Both the position numbers and the translations under genes were made by a program. Below are positions 17,924 through 45,912 of a DNA stretch of 64,000 nucleotides, piece by piece (position 1 is the first letter of the stretch; each line of letters opens with the position of its first letter). Where the stretch lies: the sequence record OR258281.1; one strand, written 5' to 3'. Below the pieces are notes generated by a model. It ran no database searches. It saw nothing but the letters and a program-made list of their open reading frames with translations, and was not told the DNA's origin.

Positions 17924-18218
17924 AGAATTTTTAGAAACAGCAGTACTTTCAAGTCTATTGACCTATCAATACAAAGGAAGGGCATATACAGTTAAGTGTA
18001 CTGATACCTACATTCGTATTGCATTAAAACTACGACCTTTGATCTTAACATCAACTACAGGTTCAACAATCGATTCAAAAAGAGATATTTTCATTTTTGT
18101 AATACCTGAAGCAGTTGATGACGCTTTTAATTTGAGTACTACGAATGAACACGTACTTCCCTTTGAACTTCTTGATTTGTACTTAAAATTCAAAAAGAAT
18201 CATGAAACAAAGAACTAA
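17913..18218 (+). CDS. DEFFN-motif family protein
   Basis: DDAFNLST; paralogue of the previous ORF. Confidence 0.6.
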   Translation: MNIKEFLETAVLSSLLTYQYKGRAYTVKCTDTYIRIALKLRPLILTSTTGSTIDSKRDIFIFVIPEAVDDAFNLSTTNEHVLPFELLDLYLKFKKNHETKN

Positions 18219-18231
18219 TGTGTTCTATACT
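18203..18231 (+). promoter_or_regulatory. phage-type promoter TGAAAC-N17-TATACT (copy 1)
   Basis: One of five copies with identical spacing. Confidence 0.7.
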
Positions 18232-18235
18232 ACTA

Positions 18236-18940
18236 GGGAGACTTGAAAAAGCCTCCCTTTTTTACAATCCTGATTGGTGCACCCGTTTAGTAGTGGTGAG
18301 TACTTAAGAGTTAGTACTTGCTTGGTGTAATGATATATTCCTGATCCTATCGAAAACGTAGATGGCAGATGAGTTGTCCAAACAGAACGATGAGCAAATG
18401 AGACCCGTGAAGATTTTACAGTGCACGGCAATGCGGCTCAATAAAAGTACCGGATAATACCCCGTAGGTACTCTTGATAGACATATATGGCTAAGACCCA
18501 TACCAAATGGTATAAGGGAATCTAAGTACTATACCAGATTCTGCTTCTGATTTCTATAATATAAATCCGTCCAGAATTCCTGAGTACTTCAGATAGATAT
18601 TAGTATTGATCGTATTGTACTAATATTGAGTGTAGTGATGAGCTACGACCGTTGCATATGAACAGTGATAGGAAGAAACCGGGCAACCCGCTTCCGTGTA
18701 TACAATACAATTCACAATACGATTGAATGATGACTACCAGCGTCAAAATTAGTTTATTCATCCCTCTTGTGGGGGATGGAAATGAATTCAGTCAAACCGC
18801 GTCAAGTAGTAATTGCTGTTAAAGCTATCTATAATTGTAGTAGTTTTAAAATTAATTATAACTGATTTGATATGAGAAATGAATGAACGTAGTGAATTCA
18901 TTACGAATGAAAATCTTGACTTACGAAGTAAGGCAAACAA
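18236..18940 (+). ncRNA. candidate large structured non-coding RNA (or replication origin region)
   Basis: About 700 bp with no credible ORF, directly behind a promoter, with many hairpins. Confidence 0.4.
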
Positions 18941-19318
18941 ATGTCTGATACCAATAATAGTCCATATGATGATGATTTTAAGTCATTTCTAAAAGGACTA
19001 GATTCTTCATGTATTAGTGGCAAAATCATGATTGAACCTGGTGTATCTATTACTGCGATGATTTATTTCAGTAATGGTAATACTATTTTTGTTTCTCAAA
19101 TGATTACCAGAGTAGTAAGTTACAGGAATGCAAGTAGAGATCTTATTCTGTACACAGAAGAAGGCTTGGACGAGGATGATTTTTTTAATAAAAACATGCA
19201 AAGAGAAATCTCATGTATCATCAAGTCCAGTAGTATCAAAATGATACGTGATAAGATGAAACAGTACTTACAGTCTGAAATAAAAAACCTACAAGACTTA
19301 ATAGACCTACTATCATGA
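18941..19318 (+). CDS. DEFFN-motif family protein
   Basis: EDDFFNKNM. Confidence 0.65.
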   Translation: MSDTNNSPYDDDFKSFLKGLDSSCISGKIMIEPGVSITAMIYFSNGNTIFVSQMITRVVSYRNASRDLILYTEEGLDEDDFFNKNMQREISCIIKSSSIKMIRDKMKQYLQSEIKNLQDLIDLLS

Positions 19319-19698
19319 AAACTACGCAATGTATATTAGATAAACTATCTAGTGACGATTTTTCGCTTGAATTGAAAACTAAACCTAAACCTGGAGAAAC
19401 TGGAGTATATATCTGGTTTTTGATACACTATAAACAATATAGTTACCAATCATTTCTTAATTTAGGGAATTCTTTTTGGTTCAAAACGTTAAATGAAGGA
19501 ACTTTACTTGCTAAAAATGATAATAGTCCATTTCTTGAGACGGATGAGTACTTTAATCTCAATATCCTAAATCCAATTCCAGACTTCTTACTTAAAGATA
19601 ATTACTGTAAGATTTATTATCAAATAAAAGATAGATTAAAAAGCATATATAGGCATAGTTATAGATACGAAATTTTCATGAGAATTAACGGTGAATAG
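19315..19698 (+). CDS. DEFFN-motif family protein
   Basis: TDEYFNLNILNPIPDFLLK. Confidence 0.65.
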   Translation: MKTTQCILDKLSSDDFSLELKTKPKPGETGVYIWFLIHYKQYSYQSFLNLGNSFWFKTLNEGTLLAKNDNSPFLETDEYFNLNILNPIPDFLLKDNYCKIYYQIKDRLKSIYRHSYRYEIFMRINGE

Positions 19699-20038
19699 TA
19701 CTGATATAGTGATACAAAAAATAATAGATGGAGATTATACTATTACCAGAACTTATTCTGGATGTGAAGTAATATATGTTAAATATAATTCAAAAAATAG
19801 AGTTGAACTATGGCTAGAACATTCTCTTTCTATTACCACATTTAGTTCAAGCTATGCACAGTATCTTAGAACTAAAAAACTACCAGTTGATGGATTAAGT
19901 GCTGATGAGTACTTTAATATGTCGTTAGAGTTGGATGTACCGGATATTGTATTAAAAGATAATATTAAAAAAATTATCAATTCATTTAAAAATAATATTA
20001 ACCAATCTGCATATAGCATAGAGATAAAATTATGTTAA
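19691..20038 (+). CDS. DEFFN-motif family protein
   Basis: ADEYFNMSLELDVPDIVLK. Confidence 0.65.
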   Translation: MNSTDIVIQKIIDGDYTITRTYSGCEVIYVKYNSKNRVELWLEHSLSITTFSSSYAQYLRTKKLPVDGLSADEYFNMSLELDVPDIVLKDNIKKIINSFKNNINQSAYSIEIKLC

Positions 20039-20496
20039 GTACAGAAAACCTTTTAGATGTACTTCAAAAAAAGACTTACAACAAAATGATTTGTACTAAT
20101 TTTATTAGTACTATCAAAAAGTATTTTCGTAACAGAAAAGACTTTAAAAGAAAGAAATTCAGTATTTCTTATTCCTATAAAGTTGATAATGAAGATATAC
20201 GCATTTTCATTTCAGAAACAGGCGTTAAGTATTCTGTCTTCAATACCAACATTTCTAAATATCAGTCATTCAGTGGCTGTGTACCAAAATACTCATCTCA
20301 AGATTTTATGAATCCTGATGAGTATTTTAACAAAACAATTACTGAAGAATTTCCAGATATTGTTCTGAAGAAAAACCACGATAAAATTGTGGAGTTTTTC
20401 AAAACAAGTAAAATACGACATTTCTCCTGCATTGAAGATGTAGTAGATGAGTCATTCGATATGTTCAACAAATATTTGTACCCTAACTATCTCTAG
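20032..20496 (+). CDS. DEFFN-motif family protein
   Basis: PDEYFNKTITEEFPDIVLK. Confidence 0.65.
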   Translation: MLSTENLLDVLQKKTYNKMICTNFISTIKKYFRNRKDFKRKKFSISYSYKVDNEDIRIFISETGVKYSVFNTNISKYQSFSGCVPKYSSQDFMNPDEYFNKTITEEFPDIVLKKNHDKIVEFFKTSKIRHFSCIEDVVDESFDMFNKYLYPNYL

Positions 20497-20504
20497 GAGA
20501 TTAT

Positions 20505-20750
20505 ATGAAAGTTAAACTACTAAAATTTAAAGATGCAGTACAACGTGTATGGCGTGAAGAAAAGGCTGAGTTCAGTGTGCAGTACTTTGTACATCACCTT
20601 GTACGTGGTGTATTCGCTATGATCCTTATCTCGCTGCTGTTCTGGCTGGTTAATGCAGTACTTGGAACTGGTTTTGTTGCTATCTTAGTACAGATCCCAA
20701 TCCTTGCAGTGATCATGATTATTGTTGACCGTATCAAGTTCGAACTATGA
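20505..20750 (+). CDS. small membrane protein
   Basis: GGAG SD; two hydrophobic helices. Confidence 0.65.
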   Translation: MKVKLLKFKDAVQRVWREEKAEFSVQYFVHHLVRGVFAMILISLLFWLVNAVLGTGFVAILVQIPILAVIMIIVDRIKFEL

Positions 20751-20959
20751 GTAAATTTGTAAAGTACAAAGATTGCTGTGTAGTTAATATGGATCAAGTA
20801 TCATATTTCAATATTTTTACGAGATGTATTAGATTTTTCCATACTGACAGTGAAGATAATTTTACTGAATGGCGTGTATATTCAAAAGAAGAAGCAGAAT
20901 ACGTATATGAACTGCTACTGAATTTGACTAACACTGTAGTACTTAAAGATTTTAAATAA
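20747..20959 (+). CDS. hypothetical protein
   Basis: Overlapping start/stop coupling. Confidence 0.6.
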   Translation: MSKFVKYKDCCVVNMDQVSYFNIFTRCIRFFHTDSEDNFTEWRVYSKEEAEYVYELLLNLTNTVVLKDFK

Positions 20960-20976
20960 AAAGCAGTAAATTTTTT

Positions 20977-21005
20977 TGAAACGATTTTGAAAGATGTACT
21001 ATACT
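20977..21005 (+). promoter_or_regulatory. phage-type promoter TGAAAC-N17-TATACT (copy 2)
   Basis: Ends 10 nt before tRNA-Ser. Confidence 0.75.
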
Positions 21006-21015
21006 ATTAGTACTT

Positions 21016-21103
21016 GGAGAGTTGGGTGAGCGGCTTAAACCAACAGTCTACTAAATTGTCGCAGAGAAATCTGCCGTGGGTTCGAATCCCACACTCTCCG
21101 CCA
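21016..21103 (+). tRNA. trnS: tRNA-Ser, anticodon ACT
   Basis: GGAGAGT/ACTCTCC acceptor, anticodon arm ACAGT-CT-ACT-AA-ATTGT, long variable arm, TTCGAAT T-loop, GCCA end. Confidence 0.9.
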
Positions 21104-21170
21104 CATTTACTTGTCGTCTAATTTTATAATATAGTAGTAACAACAAAAAGCAGTTACGAGATATTATATA

Positions 21171-21226
21171 GGATACTACGTTCGAAATGCGTGGGGATGT
21201 AGGTGAGATTCCTACCGAGTATGCCA
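21171..21226 (+). pseudogene. tRNA-like remnant (T-arm, acceptor 3' strand and CCA)
   Basis: GTAGG-TGAGATT-CCTAC then CGAGTATGCCA; no D-arm. Confidence 0.3.
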
Positions 21227-21232
21227 AATTAA

Positions 21233-21302
21233 AGCCCATATAGGTAATGTGTTCGGCCTCTAAAACCAAAACACAAGAGTTCAAGTCTCTTATGGGTTAC
21301 CA
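21233..21302 (+). tRNA. degenerate tRNA, most likely CTA (amber) anticodon
   Basis: AGCCCAT/ATGGGTT acceptor, AAGAG-TTCAAGT-CTCTT T-arm, ACCA end, loop CT-CTA-AA; weak anticodon stem, no D-stem. Confidence 0.45.
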
Positions 21303-21349
21303 ATTCTAATGGAGAATAAATTATGAAATAGACCAAACCATCTTTAAAA

Positions 21350-21679
21350 ATGTTTCGCTGGGGTAACGATAAGTACTCACATTTAGGTTATAGAATTTTC
21401 ACACTTGCTTATTGTAAGAGATTCGACTTATATCTCTTTAAGTACAATGAAGGTTCGTTTATTCCTAAGCATAAAGATCCCTCTTTTGGGATGCGACACT
21501 ACCGACTTAATTTAGTACTAAAGAAGCCGGATAAAGGTGGAGAGTTTATTTGTAATAATAAAATCTTCTCTATATTCAATGATAGAATCATGCTCTTTAG
21601 AGCAGATACTGAGTACCATAAGATTACAAAAGTTGAAAAGGGTACTAGATGGCTACTGAGCCTCGGTATCAGACTATGA
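21350..21679 (+). CDS. 2OG-Fe(II) oxygenase
   Basis: HKD..GGEF..H...RW facial-triad pattern. Confidence 0.7.
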   Translation: MFRWGNDKYSHLGYRIFTLAYCKRFDLYLFKYNEGSFIPKHKDPSFGMRHYRLNLVLKKPDKGGEFICNNKIFSIFNDRIMLFRADTEYHKITKVEKGTRWLLSLGIRL

Positions 21680-21686
21680 GGTACTT

Positions 21687-21911
21687 ATGGCAAAGACTTA
21701 TAAACCTGAAGTTCACTCCGAATATGAAACGTATTGGGGTGAAGAAAGTGTTTACCATTCAGCACGAATGGTCTACGATAAGCACGGAAAATATGTGACT
21801 TTAGACTCACATTTGAGTACTGTTAATACTCTAATCAGAGTACAGAATAAAAACAGAAAATTCAAAGAAGAAATTGAACGTCTTAAAGAAGAAATTAAGA
21901 AACTAAAATGA
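21687..21911 (+). CDS. hypothetical protein
   Basis: GAGG SD; coiled-coil tail. Confidence 0.6.
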   Translation: MAKTYKPEVHSEYETYWGEESVYHSARMVYDKHGKYVTLDSHLSTVNTLIRVQNKNRKFKEEIERLKEEIKKLK

Positions 21912-22372
21912 AAAACTCAGTGACTGAATATTTGAAGTTAATAATGCGTTATCTTAAAGTTGATACGTTTGAAGATATTACTGATTATAATTACCGTCAT
22001 CAAACTGAATTTAAATTTGAATCAAAAAGAAAGTTTTTACTACAGAAATATATTTCTTCTAGATATAAAAAAGATGAACCAATTGTACCACTGATTTATA
22101 GTTTGTATTATAATGGTTTCTTTATTACCTATAGAACGGTCACAAAGAACTTAGAATTCAGAATGCATCAATTTCAAAAAGGTTCTATCACAGTAGATAT
22201 ACCACTTGATATCGATTCTAAAGATGAATTCTTCAATTTTGCACTTGAAAATAACATTGGTTATTTAAAGCTTGAAGACTTAGATATACTCCGTGAAATT
22301 GTAGAAATTATTAAAATAACTACTAAAAGTGGTGGATATTCGGATAAACTTTATGCAAATCAAAACAATTGA
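21908..22372 (+). CDS. DEFFN-motif family protein
   Basis: KDEFFNFALEN. Confidence 0.65.
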   Translation: MKNSVTEYLKLIMRYLKVDTFEDITDYNYRHQTEFKFESKRKFLLQKYISSRYKKDEPIVPLIYSLYYNGFFITYRTVTKNLEFRMHQFQKGSITVDIPLDIDSKDEFFNFALENNIGYLKLEDLDILREIVEIIKITTKSGGYSDKLYANQNN

Positions 22373-22796
22373 AACGCATCTCAGGTTAATGAAGTACTAT
22401 CTGAAAAATGATAATATGTGTAAACATTCAGATGATTCTGACATTACTGATTATCCCACACTTGAGTTTAAATCTGAGAGGATAAGTCTTAGCACTCAAG
22501 TATGTAATAGAATTGATAATACATACAGTACTTTAATTGAAGTACGTTATGGTACTGTAATGATAATGTTCGGTACTGAGTACTATAACACGGGTTATAT
22601 GTATGTACATAATAAACCTTTTTCGAAGGAAAACAGTTTATTAACTGTACCACGTGGTATTGAAACTATTGATGACTTCTTCAATTACATATTAGTACAC
22701 GATACGCCTTATTTTGAATATGATATAATTCCAGTACTGAATGAAATTGTTGTTTTGGTAACTGAATTTTTGAAATTGAAGTGTAAGTATTTTTAG
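22353..22796 (+). CDS. DEFFN-motif family protein
   Basis: IDDFFNYILVH; N-terminus resembles neighbours (LRLMKYYL / LKLIMRYL / LKLMLHFL). Confidence 0.65.
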   Translation: MQIKTIETHLRLMKYYLKNDNMCKHSDDSDITDYPTLEFKSERISLSTQVCNRIDNTYSTLIEVRYGTVMIMFGTEYYNTGYMYVHNKPFSKENSLLTVPRGIETIDDFFNYILVHDTPYFEYDIIPVLNEIVVLVTEFLKLKCKYF

Positions 22797-22802
22797 GTAC
22801 TT

Positions 22803-23225
22803 ATGAAAAAATCTATTGGGTCTTGTCTCAAATTAATGTTACATTTTTTGCAAAAAGATGAACTTATTACAGACAATGATAAAAAACATAGTATAAGTTC
22901 ATACATAGCAGAATTAAAGTCTGAAAGGCTTGATGTATTAATATCAGGCCACACCGGTACTATAAGTACAAGTACATTATTGTATGTGCATTACAATGAT
23001 ACAAAAATATATATCAAGAACAGTAAAGTTTATATTGCTACGAAAAAGTTTGGTGACGAAGCCAGAAGTTTTTCTGCACCAATCGAAATTGCGGATAAAG
23101 GTGAATTTTTTAATTATGTATTAGAAAATGATGTTGATTGTCTAAAATTTGAAGACCTTGATACTGTTAGATCTATCCTTGATGTTTTAAGTGAAAAACG
23201 TTCAAATTTGTTTAAAAAAACGTGA
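22803..23225 (+). CDS. DEFFN-motif family protein
   Basis: KGEFFNYVLEN. Confidence 0.65.
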   Translation: MKKSIGSCLKLMLHFLQKDELITDNDKKHSISSYIAELKSERLDVLISGHTGTISTSTLLYVHYNDTKIYIKNSKVYIATKKFGDEARSFSAPIEIADKGEFFNYVLENDVDCLKFEDLDTVRSILDVLSEKRSNLFKKT

Positions 23226-23251
23226 AACGTTTTCGAAATATGTTCTATACT
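23223..23251 (+). promoter_or_regulatory. phage-type promoter TGAAAC-N17-TATACT (copy 3)
   Basis: Precedes a structured RNA and tRNA cluster. Confidence 0.75.
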
Positions 23252-23287
23252 ATAGATACAAAGATTGATTAGCAATTAAAACTTTTT

Positions 23288-23506
23288 AAGTACTCAACCT
23301 GCTCTCATTTATAGTTGAGTACTTCTTTTAAAGTTAACTTTAAGATGAATACTCATTTATCACCTTACTCTCGTTGATAATAAAAGTAAGCAGGATAACC
23401 CCTCAGTTAAAGCTGTCCTGCTACTTTCATCTTAAAGTTAATTTGATAACTAAAGAAAAGAAAGTACGTGAGTAACCAAAGTAGGTTAACTACGCTCTTG
23501 TACTTT
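23288..23506 (+). ncRNA. candidate structured RNA in the tRNA-operon leader
   Basis: 11-bp and 16-bp perfect stems with nested hairpins. Confidence 0.5.
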
Positions 23507-23513
23507 TGTATTT

Positions 23514-23589
23514 GCTTCCTTAGCACAGCAGGTAGTGCAACGCACTTGTAATGCGTAGGTCGGCGGTTCGATTCCGTCAGGGAGCACCA
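23514..23589 (+). tRNA. trnT: tRNA-Thr(TGT)
   Basis: ACGCA-CT-TGT-AA-TGCGT arm; full cloverleaf; CCA. Confidence 0.95.
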
Positions 23590-23596
23590 AGATAAA

Positions 23597-23672
23597 TGCT
23601 CGTTAGCTCAGTAGGTAGAGCAGTTGACTGTTAATCAATTGGTCACAGGTTCAAGTCCTGTACGAGCAGCCA
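23597..23672 (+). tRNA. trnN: tRNA-Asn(GTT)
   Basis: GTTGA-CT-GTT-AA-TCAAT arm; full cloverleaf; CCA. Confidence 0.95.
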
Positions 23673-23677
23673 TATAT

Positions 23678-23768
23678 TATAACTAGACTCTGGTTGAATG
23701 TAAGTAGGGTTGAGTAGGCGTACTCAATGTGGATTCCGATACTGGAGTAACGCATATTTCTAGTTATA
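23678..23768 (+). ncRNA. candidate small structured RNA between tRNAs
   Basis: TATAACTAGA/TCTAGTTATA closing stem with inner CTCTGGT/ACTGGAG and TTGAGTA/TACTCAA stems. Confidence 0.45.
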
Positions 23769-23769
23769 T

Positions 23770-23846
23770 GGGGTTGTAGCTCAGTTGGTTAGAGCACTTG
23801 ATTGAAAATCAGGGTGTCAGTGGTTCAAATCCACTCTTCCCCACCA
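23770..23846 (+). tRNA. trnF: tRNA-Phe(GAA)
   Basis: CTTGA-TT-GAA-AA-TCAGG arm; CCA; two T-T mismatches in the acceptor. Confidence 0.88.
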
Positions 23847-25113: not shown

Positions 25114-25148
25114 TAGTAAATAGTTCGGCACAATGTGCCGAATTAATT

Positions 25149-25485
25149 AAGTACTCTATCGTCTTTACTGATAAGCCAAACAATTGCAGTTCTGTCTTTC
25201 CAGCGGAACTAAAACTTCTGGAGAACTAATCGGATGATTAATTACACTTTTATGTAAATCAAAACATGTGCGACTTTGGCGGTATTAGTCCTGACCATTA
25301 AACCGCCATAACGATCAACATTGAAGCGATTAACTCTGAAAAGTTTAACGATTGATACATTAAAAGCTAAACGCTAGATAAGCTCAATGCACTTAATGAT
25401 ATTCAAAATCCTTGATTAACGGGAACGATGTTTGCAATTTTGATCTAGGCTTACGACAAGGCTGGTAAACGGGGTTAGAGTACTT
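25149..25485 (+). ncRNA. candidate structured RNA of about 337 nt
   Basis: Perfect long-range stem AAGTACTCTA/TAGAGTACTT; internal hairpins; no ORF; terminator follows. Confidence 0.55.
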
Positions 25486-25503
25486 TACTAATTCGGTCCA
25501 AAT

Positions 25504-25530
25504 AAAGCACCTTCAACGGGTGCTTTTTTA
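25504..25530 (+). terminator. intrinsic terminator
   Basis: AAAGCACC/GGTGCTTT plus T tract. Confidence 0.75.
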
Positions 25531-25557
25531 TTGTCTTCTTTATTTTTAGATGGTACT

Positions 25558-27967: not shown

Positions 27968-28209
27968 GATTATATTAGGATGTGGGCTTAGAGGCAGCCA
28001 TCATTTAAAGAGTTTCGAGAACTACGGTACTACCAGAAAAACCTTATAGTACGGTTAGACTTATAAGTTCAGGGATTAATAATTAAAAGTTTGTTTTGCA
28101 TAGGATTCGATCCTGGCAGAATTAAGTACACGAACTGAGAGGGAAAGGGAGTGTATAATGCTTTTAGTTGCCCTTAGAGAATTTGGCGTGACAGCACACT
28201 ATTATAATC
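27968..28209 (+). ncRNA. 23S rRNA L11-binding domain (helices 43/44) mimic with a 172-nt insert
   Basis: AGGATGTGGGCTTAGAGGCAGCCATCATTTAAAGAGT..GCGTGACAGCACACT matches the 23S nt 1054-1105 sequence as I recall it; closed by a GATTATA/TATAATC stem. Confidence 0.8.
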
Positions 28210-30186: not shown

Positions 30187-30683
30187 ATGCTCAAGATGTA
30201 CTTCATCTTTTGAAGAATCATAAAAAACATTTTTATTATGCTTACACCAAAAAAACACAAACTACTAAGTCCAACAAATATCTCAAAAAAGCCAAAGCTA
30301 AGAACTTTGGATCAGTAAGAGCAAAGTACTTCAAAAAAGCAAGAGAAGCAATCCGTGTTATGCCTTATCATAGTCGTTCTGATGAATTTACTGTTTCAAT
30401 TCAGTTAATGATAGATATGTACAACTATCTTCAAATAAGTATCAGTAATTCAGAAGTTCATTTATACGTGTTTAATGTGCGTATGCCTGAACCGATTGAT
30501 TTATATTACGGGAAGACGGGTTTAGAACGAGACGATTTTTTCAGTATTAGTTTGACTTACAATATTCCTCAATTGGTACTAAGTACCGAAATTGCTAAAC
30601 TTCGCCGGGACTTTCCAAAAAAGCTGCGTCAGAAATATTTTCAGATGAATAATGGAACCGTGAAAAAATTTGAAACGTTTTAA
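30183..30683 (+). CDS. DEFFN-motif family protein
   Basis: RDDFFSISLTYNIPQLVL. Confidence 0.65.
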   Translation: MNAQDVLHLLKNHKKHFYYAYTKKTQTTKSNKYLKKAKAKNFGSVRAKYFKKAREAIRVMPYHSRSDEFTVSIQLMIDMYNYLQISISNSEVHLYVFNVRMPEPIDLYYGKTGLERDDFFSISLTYNIPQLVLSTEIAKLRRDFPKKLRQKYFQMNNGTVKKFETF

Positions 30684-30699
30684 AAATGTGTCCTATACT
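30671..30699 (+). promoter_or_regulatory. phage-type promoter TGAAAC-N17-TATACT (copy 4)
   Basis: Identical spacing to the other copies. Confidence 0.75.
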
Positions 30700-31561: not shown

Positions 31562-31690
31562 CGGGATTAATAATTCAGGGTTTTACCTGTTAGGTAAAAT
31601 TGTCTAAGGAGTGTGCATAGACACTCTCTGAAGAATAGACTATGTATCCCGATATATACTGAGTACTTTGATATTATATTGAAGTACTCA
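31562..31690 (+). ncRNA. candidate structured RNA upstream of tRNA(CAT)
   Basis: CGGGAT/ATCCCG closing stem, TTTTACCT/AGGTAAAA and GTCTA/TAGAC arms, TGAGTACTT/AAGTACTCA hairpin. Confidence 0.4.
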
Positions 31691-31705: not shown

Positions 31706-31797
31706 GGGCCAGTTGGCTAGTGGCCGAAGCCGCTCGACTCATAATCGATTACAGTTAACCAGACACATCACAGGTTCGAATCCTGTCTGGCCCACCA
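31706..31797 (+). tRNA. tRNA with CAT anticodon (Met or Ile2) and a 20-nt extra arm
   Basis: GGGCCAG/CTGGCCC acceptor, CT-CAT-AA loop, TTCGAAT T-loop, ACCA end. Confidence 0.85.
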
Positions 31798-32136: not shown

Positions 32137-32152
32137 TAATAAAGAGAATCAA

Positions 32153-32293
32153 ATGAAGACACGCTATATTGTTTATTATATCCTTTTAGGTATTGCTGGA
32201 GTACTATTTGTAACTTCTGCTTTCGTGCTAACGCCATTTAACTACTTCTTGTTAATAGTAGGTTTTGTGGCTGCCTTAGTATGGTATGTATAA
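32153..32293 (+). CDS. small membrane protein
   Basis: Translated by hand: MKTRYIVYYILLGIAGVLFV.. Confidence 0.55.
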   Translation: MKTRYIVYYILLGIAGVLFVTSAFVLTPFNYFLLIVGFVAALVWYV

Positions 32294-32334
32294 AAGTACA
32301 ACATGAGAAGTTTATTTAAATCACAAGGAACTAA

Positions 32335-32511
32335 ATGAATATCATCAAATATATTTTAATGAGTATAGCAGGTGTATTGTTTGTAGGTTCTTTATTTTTT
32401 AGTTTCCCTGTTAGCAACTATATATTACTTGGTGGTTGGATTTCGTACATGGTCTCGTTGGTAATACATTACTACAAACAAAAGCCATTTCGTAAATTGA
32501 ATGATTTTTAA
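32335..32511 (+). CDS. small membrane protein (paralogue of the previous gene)
   Basis: Translated by hand: MNIIKYILMSIAGVLFV..; AAGGA SD. Confidence 0.55.
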   Translation: MNIIKYILMSIAGVLFVGSLFFSFPVSNYILLGGWISYMVSLVIHYYKQKPFRKLNDF

Positions 32512-32522
32512 GGTACTCCATA

Positions 32523-33052: not shown

Positions 33053-33071
33053 CATCTGAAAGCGTGACTGC

Positions 33072-33237
33072 AAGTAAGTGGATTGGTAAGGTTCCCGCTT
33101 CCGATGTGCTGGGGAATAGTTCAGTAGGATAACAACGGCTACTCCAATCGACTAGGGTCTGATCTACATTGGTAGGCTTCCTAACCGGACGTAGGGATTA
33201 GTCATCCCAGGGGCATTCGTCACTGCCCTACTTATTT
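33072..33237 (+). ncRNA. candidate multi-branched RNA abutting tRNA-Leu
   Basis: AAGTAAGTG/TACTTATTT closing stem enclosing four GC-rich arms. Confidence 0.5.
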
Positions 33238-33322
33238 GCGGGTATGGTGAAATTGGTAAACACAGGGGATTTAAAATCCCCCGCCGTATGGCTTGTCGGT
33301 TCAAGTCCGACTACCCGCACCA
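33238..33322 (+). tRNA. trnL: tRNA-Leu(TAA)
   Basis: GGGGA-TT-TAA-AA-TCCCC arm; long variable arm; CCA. Confidence 0.95.
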
Positions 33323-33336
33323 TTAATTAAAACAAC

Positions 33337-33412
33337 GCAGACGTAGTGTTAGCGGTTAGCACGGTTGGCTTCCACCCAATAAGCGAGAGTTCAAATCTCT
33401 CTGTCTGCTCCA
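33337..33412 (+). tRNA. trnG: tRNA-Gly(TCC)
   Basis: GTTGG-CT-TCC-AC-CCAAT arm; TCCA end. Confidence 0.95.
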
Positions 33413-40555: not shown

Positions 40556-40558
40556 TAT

Positions 40559-40693
40559 ATGCATCCTAATGCACGCCGTTATCGTACCCAATCACGCCCA
40601 CTTAAGTTAAGTGATTTGGTTCCTCAGTACCGGAAGAAAGAAATTCCTGATAATGTGATCCGTGTTGACTTCCAAGCTAAAAAGAAAATCTAA
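40559..40693 (+). CDS. small basic protein
   Basis: Translated by hand: MHPNARRYRTQSRPLKLSDLVPQYRKKEIPDNVIRVDFQAKKKI; GGAG SD. Confidence 0.6.
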   Translation: MHPNARRYRTQSRPLKLSDLVPQYRKKEIPDNVIRVDFQAKKKI

Positions 40694-40702
40694 AGGTGAA
40701 CT

Positions 40703-40921
40703 ATGAGTACTAAAGTTACATTACACGTATCTGATGAAGATATGGAATATGCTCATTCCCCTTGGACTTCTGCTGAATCTGCATTACAGGCAGTCAATAA
40801 AGTACTTAAAGAACGTGGCATCGATATTGAGTTCGAAGTGCTCAATTATGGCTGTGCTGAAGATGTACCAGATGAATTCTTCGGTGAGGATGATGAATGG
40901 ATCGAGGTGAAAGAAGAATAA
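40703..40921 (+). CDS. hypothetical acidic protein
   Basis: AGGTG SD. Confidence 0.6.
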   Translation: MSTKVTLHVSDEDMEYAHSPWTSAESALQAVNKVLKERGIDIEFEVLNYGCAEDVPDEFFGEDDEWIEVKEE

Positions 40922-41086
40922 TGAAACTATTTTTCAAACAGTTCTTTTGTCACCATGATTATGAGTATTACAAATCCGTTAGTGTATCTTTCCTCTTAAA
41001 GTATTCACATTCGTACTATGAGTATAAATGTAAGAAGTGCGATAAGATTAAAAATACTAACGAAAAATTATAATAAAACTAATAAT

Positions 41087-41162
41087 GCTCCTATAGTTAA
41101 ACTGGACATAACCTGAACCTTCTAAGTTCATGTTCCCCGTTCGAGTCGGGGTGGGAGTGCCA
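41087..41162 (+). tRNA. trnR: tRNA-Arg(TCT)
   Basis: TGAAC-CT-TCT-AA-GTTCA arm; GCCA end. Confidence 0.93.
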
Positions 41163-41179
41163 TATTTTTAGGGTTCACA

Positions 41180-41395
41180 ATGAAAGTAAAAATTAAAGAC
41201 TTATCAGGTTTTTGTAGTTCAGTATTTGGCGGCGATGATTTTATTCGTCATTTCCCTGAACTGCAAAGTACCGGAATTGAAGTTAAACAGCATGACGGTA
41301 ATTACTATGTAATGATCGACAACAAGATTGCACACGATAGTTGTTTCTTCAGTCCTAGCGAAATGAAGTACTTGGAAGAGGTGAAAAATGCGTAA
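41180..41395 (+). CDS. hypothetical protein
   Basis: 71 aa. Confidence 0.6.
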   Translation: MKVKIKDLSGFCSSVFGGDDFIRHFPELQSTGIEVKQHDGNYYVMIDNKIAHDSCFFSPSEMKYLEEVKNA

Positions 41396-41654
41396 CAAAA
41401 CTATTCCAGACTATAAAGCACTATATCAGGAAGCAGCACAAAAGCTGAACTGTACTGAAATTGATCTACGTATGTACTCGTGGTATGAATCTTTTCCAAC
41501 TACTGCTGGCCCACACAAAGACCGTATTGCAGGGCAGGCATTTACCGATTTCCAGGTACTGGCATTCAGTACTGTTAACTGTAGCGATGCTGTGATGTAC
41601 TGTGACGGTATTTGGTCTAAGTGGGACGGTCGTACTATGGGTGGCTGGAAATGA
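41388..41654 (+). CDS. hypothetical protein
   Basis: GAGGTG SD. Confidence 0.6.
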   Translation: MRNKTIPDYKALYQEAAQKLNCTEIDLRMYSWYESFPTTAGPHKDRIAGQAFTDFQVLAFSTVNCSDAVMYCDGIWSKWDGRTMGGWK

Positions 41655-42046
41655 AACTTGCTGAACTTATCGATGTAGTGAAACAAAATCCAGGCCGGGA
41701 TCTCATCTTTAAAGTACAGCCAAAACAAAGTCTTGAAGTCGGTCCTGGTTATACCAACTTTAAGATCAATTATAGTCATTGTATTTTAGTACTATCCAGA
41801 ATTCAACATGGTGAATCATACTCAAAGAATCATGTTGAAATTAATTCTCCGGTTATTGTTGGTTTGTTTAGTCTTCCACTTGAACAAAACAAACATATCA
41901 GTAATAAAGACATGGATAACCTTAAAAGTAATTTTCTTGAAAAAGATGGTACATTCAGTACTGTAATGTTTATTACCAATGATGAATTCTGTTCTGGTAT
42001 TGAATTATTACATGTTTGTGAACCTGATACCTGCGGGATCGAATAA
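41651..42046 (+). CDS. hypothetical protein
   Basis: Coupled ATG at 41651. Confidence 0.6.
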   Translation: MKLAELIDVVKQNPGRDLIFKVQPKQSLEVGPGYTNFKINYSHCILVLSRIQHGESYSKNHVEINSPVIVGLFSLPLEQNKHISNKDMDNLKSNFLEKDGTFSTVMFITNDEFCSGIELLHVCEPDTCGIE

Positions 42047-42112
42047 AGAGGTTGACAGAATTACATAAACTGTGTTATGGTCGTAAGGTACATAATACAC
42101 GGGGATAGAAAA

Positions 42113-42346
42113 ATGTTATTCACACTACTCTTTATCATAACTACCAGTACTGGTGGTATAACTTCCAATTCAGTACAAAATTTAACAGAACAAGACTGCA
42201 ACGATATTAAGAAGACAATAAACTACCGCTTTAGTGGGTACGTTAAAATGAATGATTGTTTCGTACAGGGAACTCCTAATTTCATTATTACTGATCAGTC
42301 CAAAGAACAGAAAGAGTTGGATGCACTGATTAAAAAGGTGAAGTAA
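42113..42346 (+). CDS. small exported or membrane protein
   Basis: Hydrophobic N-terminus; two Cys. Confidence 0.55.
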   Translation: MLFTLLFIITTSTGGITSNSVQNLTEQDCNDIKKTINYRFSGYVKMNDCFVQGTPNFIITDQSKEQKELDALIKKVK

Positions 42347-42672
42347 TGGACATTGTACCCTTTTCTTTCATATTAGATAGCGTAGGCGAGTACTGGATCA
42401 TAGAACGTGTAGAGCGTTGTATTGTCGGTAGGGATTATCTTACACCTGATAGTATCGGAATAGGGTACAAGTTACCTCACAATAAAGTATTCCTTGAAGG
42501 GTCAAGCCGCAAGGAATATATTAACATGCGTACATGTACCTTTCAGCAGTTGCGGAATTTTTTGAATCACAGTGTTAGTACTGAAAAATCATGGATTTAC
42601 GTTTTAGACATTAAAGGTGTTATAAAACGTAAACCCTTTTTGTTTGAGATACCTGGAGTGCCGGAAATATGA
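42346..42672 (+). CDS. hypothetical protein
   Basis: Coupled start. Confidence 0.6.
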   Translation: MDIVPFSFILDSVGEYWIIERVERCIVGRDYLTPDSIGIGYKLPHNKVFLEGSSRKEYINMRTCTFQQLRNFLNHSVSTEKSWIYVLDIKGVIKRKPFLFEIPGVPEI

Positions 42673-43028
42673 TAAGTGTTGTGGTAAGCATTGATACTAT
42701 ATACAATTACAGAGAAACATTTGATTTTAATCATGGGATCAAAATACGTTCACCTAAAACCGATTTTTATATTGGAAATATGAGTATAGAAGACCATCCA
42801 TGTTTTTTCATTGCTAATCCATACAAAACATCACTTAATTTTGATATAAAATCCGGTTATATATCTATAAATGATGAAAAGTGGATTCCATATATTTTCG
42901 AAGATAAAAATGAATTCTTCCAGCATCAAACAATGAATAATTACTATGACTTAAAGTTTGAGCATTTAGTTAAGTTAAAAGAACTCTTTGAATTTTTATG
43001 TAAGAAACTAAATTATGAACTTGAATGA
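42669..43028 (+). CDS. DEFFN-motif family protein
   Basis: KNEFFQHQTMNNYYDL. Confidence 0.62.
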   Translation: MISVVVSIDTIYNYRETFDFNHGIKIRSPKTDFYIGNMSIEDHPCFFIANPYKTSLNFDIKSGYISINDEKWIPYIFEDKNEFFQHQTMNNYYDLKFEHLVKLKELFEFLCKKLNYELE

Positions 43029-43410
43029 AGTAGTGAATAATATTGTAACCAATCTACATACTTTTGAGGTTGAGAGTTACCGGACAAGTAGTGATGGTAC
43101 TTATTATGGAAGGGTATTTAAAAGTACTGAGCATGAAAACCCAATCGTTGTTATTGATAATTTTGGTAGATTTTTAGTTCAAGTAAGAAATAAAACTAAT
43201 ATTTTATTTTTATCAGAGTTGGATTGTACCATAAGAAATGATTATGGAATGTACATACCCGATTGTAGTATCTGGTACGAAGAGTGTACTACAAAATCTG
43301 ACTTCTTCAATATATCAGTACTTCATGATTTATTGGGATTAACTTTTGAGTCCTTTTTGGACACCAAAAAAATATTCCACGCGTTCACCAAAACCGATAA
43401 AAAATCGTGA
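43015..43410 (+). CDS. DEFFN-motif family protein
   Basis: KSDFFNISVLHDLLGL. Confidence 0.65.
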   Translation: MNLNEVVNNIVTNLHTFEVESYRTSSDGTYYGRVFKSTEHENPIVVIDNFGRFLVQVRNKTNILFLSELDCTIRNDYGMYIPDCSIWYEECTTKSDFFNISVLHDLLGLTFESFLDTKKIFHAFTKTDKKS

Positions 43411-43436
43411 AACGCTTTATGAATGTGTCCTATACT
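43408..43436 (+). promoter_or_regulatory. phage-type promoter TGAAAC-N17-TATACT (copy 5)
   Basis: Upstream of a small ORF and the RNA array. Confidence 0.75.
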
Positions 43437-43468
43437 ATAGATGTAGGGAACAGCAGCGAAGAGACACT

Positions 43469-43600
43469 ATGACGGCTGAACAGTTACACGAACTACTTGA
43501 TGCGTTAGCACAAGGTAAAGGAGACGAGTTTCTAAGTGAACTTGGCTTCGAATGTACAAAGAATGATTCAAAGTCTATTGAATGGACTCTGAAGAAATAA
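43469..43600 (+). CDS. small hypothetical protein
   Basis: MTAEQLHELLDALAQGKG..; GAGA SD. Confidence 0.5.
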   Translation: MTAEQLHELLDALAQGKGDEFLSELGFECTKNDSKSIEWTLKK

Positions 43601-43610
43601 AAAGTATTTT

Positions 43611-43661
43611 AGGATTCTTACAGCAACCATAATCTTATGCTTAAAGAAAAAAGAGAATCCT
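43611..43661 (+). ncRNA. ACAGCAA hairpin unit 1
   Basis: AGGATTCT-TACAGCAA..AGAATCCT followed by GTATTAATTTAG. Confidence 0.65.
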
Positions 43662-43671
43662 GTATTAATTT

Positions 43672-43753
43672 AGCAAGATAACATAAAGTCATCACAATGT
43701 ACCAGCCAAACTTAGGGTTGGGTATGTAGCCTGACGCACTACTCTTGCAACCA
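43672..43753 (+). ncRNA. cloverleaf-shaped RNA ending in ACCA with non-canonical loops
   Basis: GCAAGA/TCTTGC, ACAT/ATGT, CCAGCC/GGTTGG and GTAG/CTAC stems in tRNA order. Confidence 0.45.
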
Positions 43754-43759
43754 GTATTG

Positions 43760-43818
43760 AAGAATCTTACAGCAAACATAACCCAATCAAACTTTTAATT
43801 TGAAAATTAAAGATTCTT
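43760..43818 (+). ncRNA. ACAGCAA hairpin unit 2 with a tRNA-Lys(UUU)-like anticodon arm
   Basis: AAGAATCT/AGATTCTT stem; TCAAA-CT-TTT-AA-TTTGA. Confidence 0.7.
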
Positions 43819-43839
43819 GTTTTAATTTAGACCAGATTT

Positions 43840-43898
43840 TGGATTCTTCCAGCAACCATAAAACAATCAAACTTTTAATTTGAAAATTAAAGAATCCA
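43840..43898 (+). ncRNA. ACAGCAA hairpin unit 3 with a tRNA-Lys(UUU)-like anticodon arm
   Basis: TGGATTCT/AGAATCCA stem; identical anticodon arm to unit 2. Confidence 0.7.
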
Positions 43899-43922
43899 GT
43901 ATTAATTAGTACTACAAGTTTT

Positions 43923-44040
43923 TGGAATCAAACAGCAAACAATTCTAATGGGAACTTTTTGTCGCGGGTTCGAATCCCTCCCTCACGTCCCGCGTGAGGT
44001 AGCTCAGCGGTAGAGCGAAAGTAGAAAAAAATTGATTCCA
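43923..44040 (+). ncRNA. ACAGCAA hairpin unit 4 containing a circularly permuted tRNA (YrlA Y-RNA-like)
   Basis: Order is T-arm, loop-closed 7-bp acceptor, TA, D-arm; ACTTT/AAAGT anticodon stem opens into the TGGAATCA/TGATTCCA outer stem. Confidence 0.8.
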
Positions 44041-44070
44041 GTTTTAATTTAAACAACATGTGAATACATC

Positions 44071-44787
44071 ATGAGCAAACTAGATAAAAGTACTTCTGAA
44101 GATAAACCAAAAAAAGTTAAGAAAGTAAAAGAGCAGAAGGTTGAAGTACCAACTGTTAAATTTGCATCTTTAACTATCATGGATAATCCTAAAGTAGCAA
44201 CTCATACAATGACTGGTACTATTAATGATAGTACTCATAAAGAGTTCCGCGAGTTCCTGAATAAAGTATTTGAACACAATCGCAAGATTGATGATGATGC
44301 ACGTGAAAATGCAGAGAAAGTTGAATTTAATAAGATTCACGATCCTGAAGCTAAAAATACCTTTGTCTTTAAGAAAGACAAAATTGAGCGTATCAATCTG
44401 GTTATTGATAGTTATGGCGGTGCATGTCGTAGTATGATGAACATTACTGCACTCATGGAAGCATCCCCTATCCCGATTGATACCTACTGCTTCGGCGTAG
44501 CTATGAGTGCTGGGTTTATGATCTTCGTGCATGGCAAACGCCGCTACGTAGGTACTGCTTCAGATTTGATGACTCACAGCTTAAGTACTATGGTATGGGA
44601 TAATGCACCTAATATCTTGACTCAGGCTGAACAAATCAACAAGCTGAATCAGATCTTCCAGAAGATCATTTCTTCTAAAACTGGTCTTACAATGGACTGG
44701 ATGAAGGAAAATGAAAAGATTGATGTTCATTTCTTTGCAGACGAAGCGGTTAAGCTTAAAATTGCTGACTTCATTGTAGAGTACTGA
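44071..44787 (+). CDS. clpP: ClpP-family protease
   Basis: LVIDSYGG, GVAMSAG (catalytic Ser), LMTHS (His), DVHFFADEAVKL. Confidence 0.85.
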   Translation: MSKLDKSTSEDKPKKVKKVKEQKVEVPTVKFASLTIMDNPKVATHTMTGTINDSTHKEFREFLNKVFEHNRKIDDDARENAEKVEFNKIHDPEAKNTFVFKKDKIERINLVIDSYGGACRSMMNITALMEASPIPIDTYCFGVAMSAGFMIFVHGKRRYVGTASDLMTHSLSTMVWDNAPNILTQAEQINKLNQIFQKIISSKTGLTMDWMKENEKIDVHFFADEAVKLKIADFIVEY

Positions 44788-44797
44788 TAAAATATTT

Positions 44798-44852
44798 TGG
44801 ATTCTTACAGCAACCATAACCTTTACTGATGATAAAAGAAACCTAGAATCCA
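44798..44852 (+). ncRNA. ACAGCAA hairpin unit 5
   Basis: TGGATTCT-TACAGCAA..AGAATCCA-GTTTTAATTTAG; inner TTTA-CT-GAT-GA-TAAA. Confidence 0.65.
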
Positions 44853-44873
44853 GTTTTAATTTAGATATAGCTT

Positions 44874-45200
44874 ATGAATGAACTAGAGACATTAATACAT
44901 GAAGTGCATGATCACTTAGTAAACAATGCTATTTTAGACCCGACTATAAGAATTATAGCTCGTGCAAAAAATTTCAATATTAAGTACTTTAAGTTCAATA
45001 TATACCTGTGTTCCAGTAAAGTACTATATGGTGATGGCTGCGATGCACATGAAGTACCTTACTACTTTGAGAAAGACCATTATTTTAATGCAAGTTTAGA
45101 AAATGATATTAAAATCGATTTCAACACTATGGTAAAAATTGCATCTATACTTGAGTACTATAATATTCCCTATAGGTCATTTAATGATAGAGCCTACTAA
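44874..45200 (+). CDS. DEFFN-motif family protein
   Basis: KDHYFNASLEND. Confidence 0.62.
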   Translation: MNELETLIHEVHDHLVNNAILDPTIRIIARAKNFNIKYFKFNIYLCSSKVLYGDGCDAHEVPYYFEKDHYFNASLENDIKIDFNTMVKIASILEYYNIPYRSFNDRAY

Positions 45201-45564
45201 AATAATAAAAAAGTTGCATGAATGTATTGGGAATATCCACTTTGAATTTAAACGTAAGGGCGAAAGTGAAATATGGAAATGCCGTATAGAATATGGTATT
45301 CAAATTACATGTATTGCTGGTGTTTCACCTTGCCTTTATATAATACACAATGACAAACAAGTTCTTTTTATTACTGATCGAACGGTAGCACAAAATAAAA
45401 TCAAAATAGAAAACTATCATGTTTTGCAAAATAAAGATGAATTCTTTAATTTTATAATGCTAAATGACAGTGCAGGTTTTAATCGTATTGATTTTGTGCG
45501 TTTGCCAGAAATATATGAGTACTACATACATTTGTTTCAAAACCGAAAAATAAAAGTGCCGTAA
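45184..45564 (+). CDS. DEFFN-motif family protein
   Basis: KDEFFNFIMLND. Confidence 0.62.
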   Translation: MIEPTKIIKKLHECIGNIHFEFKRKGESEIWKCRIEYGIQITCIAGVSPCLYIIHNDKQVLFITDRTVAQNKIKIENYHVLQNKDEFFNFIMLNDSAGFNRIDFVRLPEIYEYYIHLFQNRKIKVP

Positions 45565-45717
45565 GTGTCGGCGGTTTCTATAAGCGTTGCCTCACTAGCC
45601 AGAGGAATGATGGAACCGGTTAACTAACTTTACGTGTTCGGGGCATAATACATGGCAAGTATTGTGTGCAAAGGTCGCACCTGAACTTTCATATAGTATC
45701 CGACTAGTACTATATGA
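45565..45717 (+). ncRNA. candidate structured RNA with a possible pseudoknot
   Basis: CGGTTTC/GGAACCG, GTTCGGG/CCTGAAC and TCATATAGTA/TACTATATGA stems; loop CCGAC complementary to 5' GTCGG. Confidence 0.5.
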
Positions 45718-45737
45718 GCCATTAATTAAGACTCTAT

Positions 45738-45881
45738 GGGGATATTCTACCACTTGCAAATCAACAAGAATTTGATCAACTCAGCGTTGGTTGAACGGTG
45801 GCTGGTGAGATTGAAACAGTACCATGGTGTGCACAAACTGGTACTGATTCAGAGTTGGTTCGATTCCGCTCTATCCCTTCA
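45738..45881 (+). ncRNA. tRNA-like RNA with acceptor and T-arm but an expanded body
   Basis: GGGGATA/TATCCCT acceptor, TTCGATT T-loop, CAGTACCA/TGGTACTG arm; no encoded CCA. Confidence 0.6.
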
Positions 45882-45887
45882 AATTTC

Positions 45888-45912
45888 AAGACTCGCATTG
45901 CGAGTCTTTTTT
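45888..45912 (+). terminator. intrinsic terminator after the ncRNA pair
   Basis: AAGACTCGC-ATT-GCGAGTCTT plus T tract. Confidence 0.8.

Follow-up and report, generated by a model that had tools for sequence, protein, structure and literature searches.

In the last 64,000 bases of the genome of Xanthomonas phage XaC1 (OR258281.1, 348,967 bp), the stretch from 18.2 to 45.9 kb probably forms a co-oriented RNA island that encodes eight tRNAs together with stable non-coding RNAs of at least five conserved families, and whose core is a phage Ro60/Y-RNA system; this view is held with moderate confidence. The 64,000-base stretch, called the window here, corresponds to record positions 284968-348967 with 100% identity, and positions are given in window coordinates (record position minus 284,967) unless the record is named. 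XaC1 has been published as a Rak2/GAP32-like jumbo phage whose annotation includes eight tRNAs (PMC11273794), all of which lie inside the island on the + strand.

The core is made up of five tandem RNA modules (43611-44052 and 44798-44864), which would be the partner RNAs of XaC1_252, a putative Ro60-fold protein with DUF2828 and DUF7788 domains that is encoded 199 kb away behind a promoter of the same class. The stem and box of each module would dock the RNA onto the Ro60-like ring, and the insert would display part of a tRNA, namely the T and D arms in module 4 and the anticodon arm of tRNA-Lys(UUU) in modules 2 and 3. Such a display could bring tRNA-recognising proteins to the particle, be they enzymes of processing, repair or cleavage, or an exonuclease, by analogy with the Ro60-Y RNA-PNPase particle. 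A look-alike of 23S rRNA helix 43 and RNAs of about 470 nucleotides (nt), about 175 nt and four-way-junction shape would be further conserved stable RNAs of the island, and co-expression of these elements may be expected. Ro60/Y-RNA-type ribonucleoproteins are known RNA-surveillance machinery.

A sequence-only reading of this DNA had proposed a distributed set of RNA decoys that mimic the translation apparatus, and most of the elements that it listed are present, exceed chance and share the + strand. The unannotated fraction of positions 16,001-48,001 is 16.5%, with a dozen gaps of 190-640 nt each. Sliding 100-nt folding z-scores did not separate non-coding from coding DNA (means -0.83 and -0.63, p = 0.14), and the elements were therefore judged by comparison with other phages.

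Tandem modules with a common stem and box

Each module has a terminal stem whose 5' arm adjoins an ACAGCAA box, an insert that varies, and an end that reads C(U/A)GU. The terminal stem is GGATTCTT / AAGAATCC, with compensatory variants such as GGAATCAA / TTGATTCC, and the tail reads C(T/A)GT...TTAATTTAG. Module 4 holds the element described earlier as a permuted tRNA, and the description proved apt: positions 43948-44044 match the Rfam family YrlA in cmscan with 40.9 bits (E 1e-7 to 6e-6, gathering score 69), and model positions 1-114 are covered. Homologs of this module are found in Cronobacter phage GAP32 and in unrelated Klebsiella phages of the Stephanstirmvirinae, and compensatory changes occur in its outer and acceptor-like stems across five phages. 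The T arm covaries in all long-insert modules; it was the only part recovered by RNAalifold from ten such modules, as the MAFFT alignment failed on the variable parts. Sub-threshold YrlA matches are seen in XaC1 and at loci L068 and L047.

Modules 2 and 3 each hold the hairpin tcaaa-CTTTTAA-tttga, in which the loop has the same sequence as in genuine phage tRNA-Lys(UUU) genes, and the Lys-type hairpin is preserved in homologous modules of Yersinia phage fHe-Yen9-03 and Serratia phage BF. A GAP32 module with the same stem and ACAGCAA box (L035:1559-1640) has an insert with CTGTTAA, the anticodon loop of tRNA-Asn(GUU), and the inserts thus seem to sample different anticodon arms in different phages. 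The anticodon-arm hairpins that had been predicted exceed chance, with eight found in 4.4 kb of non-coding DNA against 1.96 expected, a count reached in one of 300 shuffles.

Two side observations concern this cluster. The 86-nt spacer between modules 1 and 2 (43673-43758) can form a closed hairpin, GCAAGA...TCTTGC (z = -1.3), and lies outside all homolog matches. The gene at 44071-44787, annotated as a head maturation protease, encodes a ClpP-family protein (Pfam E 2e-20) that has modules on both sides and is far from the structural genes.

Mimicry of the tRNA-Lys anticodon arm, of T and D arms and of 23S helix 43 is, as judged from sequence comparison, real, and a decoy function is a hypothesis compatible with it. 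Lys(UUU) is a classic target of anticodon nucleases, and the decoy idea is therefore not arbitrary. In its free-standing form, the idea is that early co-expressed RNAs soak up anticodon nucleases such as PrrC and RloC, tRNA-sensing abortive infection systems and uL11/RelA, which would fit the exact and conserved Lys(UUU) loop copies, the Asn(GUU)-like loop of GAP32, the conservation of the helix-43 copy across distant phages and the shared promoter class. Moreover, phage tRNAs and RNA repair have been discussed as answers to tRNA-cleaving defences (PMC11273794, PMC7824862). Nevertheless, the arm copies sit in modules that stem and box tie to a Ro60-like protein, which speaks for a ribonucleoprotein, and free-standing decoys are considered unlikely. 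The comparisons point to a module cluster that belongs to a Ro60/Y-RNA-type ribonucleoprotein rather than to such decoys.

A DUF2828 protein with a predicted Ro60 fold

The link between modules and protein comes from other phages. In Klebsiella phages KP13-16, FBKp34 and KP2025, homologs of module 4 lie about 260 nt downstream of a 479-amino-acid (aa) DUF2828+DUF7788 gene on the same strand, precede the tRNA cluster and are followed by further modules. A module finder that looked for 7-bp arms around CAGCAA, with a background of about 0.04 per kb per strand, was applied to 28 IMG/VR loci with DUF2828 homologs. It returned 45 stem+CAGCAA modules in the flanks on the gene strand, 35 of them upstream and most within 600 nt of the start, as well as one within the gene and six on the opposite strand. 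Gene-strand modules were neighbours of the DUF2828 gene, within about 4 kb of it, in 20 of the 28 loci, and tRNA clusters lay downstream in 20 of the 20 loci scanned.

The DUF2828 family is matched in 711 phage records, some of them annotated as 'Ro-like RNA binding protein', and one search returned more than 6,500 DUF2828 proteins at E <= 1e-5. An AlphaFold model was obtained for P0001, a DUF2828 protein 90% identical to that of KP13-16 (predicted local distance difference test 83.8, predicted template modelling score 0.85). In a fold search with this model, the 12 best PDB matches were all Ro60, Rsr or TROVE proteins, including the Ro60 of a Thermus phage (E 1e-10 to 2e-7, template modelling scores 0.5-0.63). 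The model has the order of the Ro60 fold, a HEAT-repeat ring followed by a von Willebrand A domain, and XaC1_252 has the same two Pfam domains, DUF2828 and DUF7788 (E 1e-31 and 4e-42; record 128391-129977). The neighbours of XaC1_252 (L094, record 126000-133000) encode an RNA ligase, a ComF-like phosphoribosyltransferase (PF15610), an HPF/RaiA-like translation inhibitor and a CCA-adding enzyme, and a terminator and a promoter of the GAAAC-N17-TATACT class stand upstream of it. Within the window, no Ro60/TROVE gene was found among the large open reading frames (ORFs) or beside the modules; the gene is located elsewhere in the genome. Among the papers available to the search, none was found that links DUF2828 to Y RNAs.

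Several points weigh against a Ro60/Y-RNA core. The YrlA Ro-binding motif GNCGAA (GNCGAAN0-1G) is missing from all five modules, being absent from the + strand of 43600-44070 and 44790-44870, where ACAGCAA stands instead. The Rfam scores of the modules stay under the gathering thresholds, also for Dicty_Class_I_RNA (RF01414; 30.4, 27.1 and 19.6 bits in XaC1 and 32.2 bits in L068, gathering score 41.5), and folding energies by themselves are unremarkable. The module 4 RNA of XaC1 (at about 328.9 kb of the record) is 199 kb from XaC1_252, beyond a distance of 4 kb. In Pfam, neither the DUF2828 protein nor XaC1_252 matches TROVE, both matching DUF2828 and DUF7788 only, and the DUF2828 profile reached non-significant values against PDB sequences (Ro60 E 0.83, TROVE E 2). 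A link from DUF2828 to Ro60 by sequence was accordingly rejected, and the match was given by the fold search instead. For the RNA families other than the modules, location or a common promoter is the only tie to the Ro60 system. Finally, in the annotation of fHe-Yen9-03, a homologous module carries -35/-10 signals.

This last annotation would also suit an explanation at the level of DNA, in which the modules are promoter, operator or terminator repeats that act in transcription and the other elements are spacers or decayed remnants, such as tRNA pseudogenes and a captured rRNA fragment. The module tails are TTTAAT-like and resemble a -10 box, and the folding z-scores are not distinguishable from those of coding sequence. 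On the other hand, the stems are compensated across paralogs and unrelated phages, as expected of RNA and not of protein-bound duplex DNA, and the modules favour the strand of the DUF2828 gene (45 against six). This explanation is regarded as quite improbable, and the modules are treated here as RNAs of the Ro60/Y-RNA kind.

A shared promoter class

The modules and several other elements stand behind the same promoter class, as had been proposed. The pattern GAAAC-N17-TATACT has five exact copies in the window, all on the + strand, against a mean of 0.095 in 200 shuffles, and a sixth copy, far outside the window, lies directly upstream of XaC1_252. The copies have about 40 nt of common context and are sigma-70-like (TGAAAC / TATACT, 18-nt spacer); four of the five in the window are followed by a non-coding stretch.

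A large multi-copy RNA

Behind the first promoter copy lies a non-coding RNA of about 470 nt. Matches with about 67% identity were found by blastn in 71 phage records, at three to five places per genome, and the carriers are all Rak2-like jumbo phages of Escherichia, Salmonella, Klebsiella, Cronobacter, Erwinia, Yersinia, Serratia, Pectobacterium and Xanthomonas. The copies occupy gaps with no coding sequence or with tiny annotated ones only, and each stands behind a promoter of its own and a short leader hairpin and T-run. A pattern scan of IMG/VR added 26 further loci, with at most three per contig. RNAalifold predicted 54 pairs from 27 sequences, 30 of them with compensatory changes, and pairing holds in 98.8% of cells, compared with 36-46% after the partners are slid. 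No match was found in Rfam 15, either in the window (E <= 5) or in six homologs (E <= 1). By these alignments, the RNA is new, large and structured, and its covariation is unusually clean. Together with the 175-nt RNA described below, which is conserved in other phages, it bears out the unnamed structured RNAs of the sequence-only reading.

A look-alike of 23S rRNA helix 43

The island was also said to hold a mimic of the rRNA GTPase centre; the claim stands for helix 43 and its junction, which are copied and covary, but not for helix 44. Positions 27977-28013 are 92% identical over 37 nt to Escherichia coli 23S rRNA, at the rrl copies of 5,426 of 5,426 genomes. The match begins about 1,043 nt and ends about 1,079 nt into the annotated 23S gene, a segment that is the GTPase-associated centre. 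Nearly base for base, the look-alike preserves the helix-43 hairpin with its loop as well as the 3' UUUAAAG junction. After AAAG, helix 44 and the closing helix are not kept by the sequence and no consensus helix is predicted there; the place of helix 44 is taken by a phage-specific AGAGUNUCGAGAA box, which is common to distant phages and absent from rRNA. In the hairpin, 93.9% of cells are paired, against 31-67% when slid, and three pairs covary.

The look-alike is syntenic in GAP32 and in Yersinia, Erwinia and other relatives, and it is also present in the Prevotella Lak megaphages and between two tRNAs of a Pseudomonas Otagovirus. A AAAGAGTNTCGAGAA-type box is found in every phage copy, while rRNA lacks it; because the phage copies have this box in common, they form a family of their own and are not repeated captures of host rRNA. 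In two jumbo-phage contigs of IMG/VR, L055 (385 kb; 4472-4530) and L063 (364 kb; 4497-4555), the look-alike follows a DUF2828 gene on the same strand at a distance of 60-90 nt, and the copy in L063 is matched by the archaeal large-subunit rRNA model of Rfam (E 6e-5). In XaC1 it is isolated, being flanked by a terminator and a promoter. Only four of 11 matches from an exact-pattern scan of IMG/VR for the look-alike were real. As a side observation, the 23S segment is also matched by several GenBank 'phage' records of 2-7 kb (e.g. Staphylococcus phage SA 1306 Kay and Listeria phage LM 4-11-1), which look like pieces of rRNA submitted under phage names.

The uL11 site requires helix 44 together with helix 43. 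Since the sequence of the look-alike retains helix 43 but not helix 44, it does not imply uL11 binding, and this further counts against free-standing decoys as far as uL11/RelA is concerned. The strong covariation of the look-alike and of the 470-nt RNA, both kept across genera, likewise argues against decayed remnants.

tRNAs and the RNAs between them

The three tRNAs that had been called atypical are so: tRNA-Ser(ACU) in its anticodon, tRNA-Phe in its acceptor stem and tRNA-Met(CAU) in its length. Directly upstream of tRNA-Phe, the predicted 'loop-less cloverleaf' turned out to be a conserved four-way junction, with a nearly invariant core and a closing stem that covaries at five pairs (Vequintavirinae phages Ro1, CR9 and DP); its Vequintavirinae homologs are always located just upstream of tRNA-Phe. 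The 175-nt RNA has 42 predicted pairs, of which ten covary, in an alignment of four sequences only.

The positions of these two RNAs, which are embedded in tRNA clusters and move between phages along with the adjacent tRNAs, would fit an island for tRNA supply. The tRNAs would then compensate for codon usage, and the structured RNAs would be cis elements for the processing or stability of polycistronic precursors, in the manner of the leader and spacer RNAs found in the tRNA cluster of phage T4. CCA is encoded by all eight tRNAs and most are canonical; additionally, five of the eight match codons that are commoner in the phage than in its host (PMC11273794). However, tRNA supply leaves unexplained the 470-nt RNA, which is multi-copy, has its own promoter and is far from any tRNA in relatives, the linkage of the modules to the Ro60-like gene, and the rRNA look-alike that stands alone between terminator and promoter. 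It is therefore thought improbable as an account of the island, and a Ro60/Y-RNA core is preferred. The positions of all features are collected in Table 1.

Table 1. Features of the XaC1 RNA island in window coordinates
Feature	Position	Strand	Remarks
Promoter copy 1	18204-18231	+	followed by short hairpin and T-run (18238-18262); same promoter and leader hairpin layout in relatives
Large structured non-coding RNA, about 470 nt	18329-18814	+	multi-copy in Rak2-like jumbo phages; blastn, covariation
Promoter copy 2	20978-21005	+	exact pattern
tRNA-Ser, anticodon ACU	21016-21103	+	A34, atypical; ARAGORN
Candidate D-armless tRNA-like RNA ending ACCA	21233-21302	+	weak orphan; z = -1.6
Promoter copy 3	23224-23251	+	exact pattern
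Three stable hairpins, tRNA-cluster leader	23288-23507	+	23288-23324; 23331-23444 (19-bp stem, z = -6.4); 23460-23507
tRNA-Thr(UGU) and tRNA-Asn(GUU)	23514-23672	+	
Four-way-junction RNA	23678-23768	+	directly upstream of tRNA-Phe; z = -4.0
tRNA-Phe(GAA)	23770-23846	+	two U.U mismatches in acceptor stem
Orphan non-coding stretch	25150-25534	+	ends can pair (AAGTACTCTA / TAGAGTACTT); intrinsic terminator 25504-25534
23S GTPase-associated-centre look-alike	27974-28040	+	helix-43-like hairpin 27978-28006, then phage-specific AAAGAGTNTCGAGAA box
Promoter copy 4	30672-30699	+	protein gene downstream
Anticodon-arm-like hairpin, loop CTGTTAG (GUU)	31582-31598	+	pattern scan
tRNA-Met(CAU)	31706-31797	+	92 nt, long variable region; atypical
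Conserved RNA of about 175 nt inside tRNA cluster	33056-33232	+	homologs between tRNA-Thr and tRNA-Gly in Klebsiella Stephanstirmvirinae
tRNA-Leu(UAA) and tRNA-Gly(UCC)	33238-33412	+	
tRNA-Arg(UCU)	41087-41162	+	
Promoter copy 5	43409-43436	+	upstream of module cluster
Module 1	43611-43673	+	stem, CUUACAGCAA and short insert; Rfam Dicty_Class_I_RNA 30.4 bits, under gathering score
Module 2	43759-43830	+	tRNA-Lys(UUU)-like anticodon arm 43787-43803
Module 3	43840-43909	+	tRNA-Lys(UUU)-like anticodon arm 43867-43883
Module 4	43923-44052	+	permuted tRNA-like YrlA-type domain: T arm, hairpin-closed acceptor-like stem, D arm
ClpP-family protease gene	44071-44787	+	between modules 4 and 5; annotated 'head maturation protease'
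Module 5	44798-44864	+	stem and CUUACAGCAA box
Candidate 'expanded tRNA-like' RNA	45738-45912	+	orphan; acceptor-like stem and T-arm-like hairpin; z = -1.8; terminator 45885-45912

Orphan candidates and surroundings

Three of the elements listed beforehand are orphans, which would be in keeping with decayed remnants. No homologs of 25114-25557, 45565-45915 or 21100-21349 were found in 50,697 phage records. The tRNA-like RNA at 21233-21302 and the 'expanded tRNA-like RNA' at 45738-45881 went undetected by ARAGORN and by the Rfam tRNA and tmRNA models, and their single-sequence folds have only acceptor-like and T-arm-like parts. Both of them, as well as the stretch at 25150-25534, are kept as candidates only. 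The annotated start of XaC1_526, which overlaps 45738-45912, lies upstream of the strong terminator at 45885-45912, and an in-frame ATG follows the terminator at 45928; the annotated 5' end of this gene may be wrong.

The gap at 32137-32522 (386 nt) was considered as an RNA and rejected, as it holds two unannotated small ORFs instead (32153-32293 and 32335-32511), which encode 46 and 58 aa and are hydrophobic and apparently paralogous; the gap is probably coding. AGTACT terminal stems were likewise ruled out as a processing signal, since the word is about tenfold over-represented in coding and non-coding DNA alike. In positions 16001-48001 it occurs three to four times per kb in both, against 0.34 per kb from base composition, and GTAC reaches 11 per kb in coding DNA, a genome-wide word bias.

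The island is flanked by genes for a sigma-70-family factor with regions 2 and 3 (56208-57212), for a 530-aa zinc-ribbon protein (15001-16593) with a borderline match to a CapR-homology domain at a score equal to the curated cut-off, and for TerC/DUF475 and TelA homologs (6645-7706 and 10358-11464). The guanine-cytosine content of the window is 30-39%, although the reported host is a Xanthomonas; that of the XaC1 genome is 35.1% (PMC11273794). The nearest relatives of XaC1 all infect Enterobacterales.

Comparison with known systems

The second-best Rfam family for the modules is that of the Dictyostelium Class I RNAs. These RNAs begin with AAG and have a 6-bp covarying terminal stem, an 11-nt box by the 5' arm, a variable remainder and a CUGU end (PMC7919456). 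The phage modules similarly have a short compensated terminal stem with a box directly 3' of the 5' arm, the 11-nt motif aligns with the CUUACAGCAA of modules 1 and 5, the modules are about 60 nt long with a variable remainder, and an AAG-type start and a CUG(U) end are seen in many phage loci. In contrast, Class I RNAs are eukaryotic, have been reported as unique to Dictyostelia and have an RRM protein as their known direct binder (PMC7919456). A further mark of this class, a DUSE promoter element about 60 nt upstream, does not apply to a phage. The module scores of 19-32 bits, set against a gathering score of 41.5, indicate a resemblance only, and no homology is claimed. One of four proteins from Class I RNA pull-downs is of unknown function, and, among the papers available to the search, the pull-down protein DDB_G0281243 was found named in none beyond the Class I preprint.

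Phage Ro60/Y-RNA systems described so far are, to our knowledge, few and have a CGAA-type motif. With the present comparisons, a much larger protein family, DUF2828, gains a predicted Ro60 fold and a candidate cognate RNA with a different box. If true, a 'hypothetical protein' that is common in phages would acquire a function, and so would the unannotated gaps next to their tRNA clusters. For their part, the copied anticodon arms and the helix-43 look-alike turn a vague idea of RNA mimicry into defined sequences that can be probed. A bolder and rather doubtful extension is that the stem+ACAGCAA RNAs are a widespread, unrecognised Y RNA class of DUF2828-type Ro60 paralogs. Phages would use them in a 'bait' particle with interchangeable tRNA-part inserts (Lys or Asn anticodon arm, T and D arms) and with the helix-43 look-alike, thereby showing the most-attacked surfaces of translation to host nucleases and sensors; the Dictyostelium Class I RNAs would then be eukaryotic members. 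The resemblance to Class I RNAs, if real, would offer a testable protein partner for a 20-year-old orphan RNA class.

Other parts of the island recall other systems. Like GOLLD, ROOL and the stable RNAs from the tRNA cluster of T4, the 470-nt RNA is a large, highly structured non-coding RNA encoded by phages, a kind often located near tRNA genes. It differs in that it matches neither GOLLD nor ROOL nor any other Rfam family and has three to five paralogous copies per genome, each with promoter and leader hairpin. The helix-43 look-alike recalls the 23S GTPase-associated centre, whose hairpin and UUUAAAG junction it shares, with pairing held by covariation, as well as rRNA-mimicking leaders of ribosomal-protein mRNAs; it differs from such leaders in that no ribosomal-protein gene is near and no Rfam leader family matches. 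As in phage tRNA islands that counter tRNA-targeting defences, there is a tRNA cluster in which some anticodon loops or stems are unusual (van den Berg et al. 2023, cited in PMC11273794; Iyer et al. 2021, PMC7824862), and genes for RNA ligases, a polynucleotide kinase and a CCA-adding enzyme are likewise present in the phage. What the XaC1 island adds to these are non-tRNA RNAs that copy only parts of tRNA or rRNA.

The closest comparison is with Ro60 (Rsr) and its Y RNAs. YrlA RNAs, which mimic tRNA, were defined by proximity to a TROVE gene, by the GNCGAA motif and by a tRNA-like domain (Chen et al. 2014, PMC4201824). The Ro60 of Thermus phage phiLo binds the phage Y-like RNAs Yrl1 and Yrl2, which have a CGAA motif, and recruits host PNPase (PMC12135203), and in some jumbo phages a ROT/TROVE protein has been noted together with a partner that is tRNA-like (Iyer et al. 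2021, PMC7824862). XaC1 resembles these systems in a predicted ring-shaped Ro60-fold protein, in RNAs composed of a terminal stem and a variable module, in the tRNA-like domain of module 4, with T and D arms around a closed acceptor-like stem, and in several Y-like RNAs arranged in tandem; in its relatives, gene and RNA are adjacent on one strand. The tRNA-like domain of YrlA (RF02553) is thus found in XaC1, but the GNCGAA motif, a same-strand gene within about 4 kb and a score of 69 bits are not. The protein is of the DUF2828/DUF7788 kind and not Pfam TROVE, the box is ACAGCAA and not GNCGAA/CGAA, the RNAs lie 199 kb from the gene and score below the YrlA threshold, and some modules show a copy of an anticodon arm in place of the T and D arms. 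The best-supported frame for the XaC1 system is therefore that of a variant of the Ro60/Y-RNA kind, with another protein subfamily, another box and new kinds of insert.

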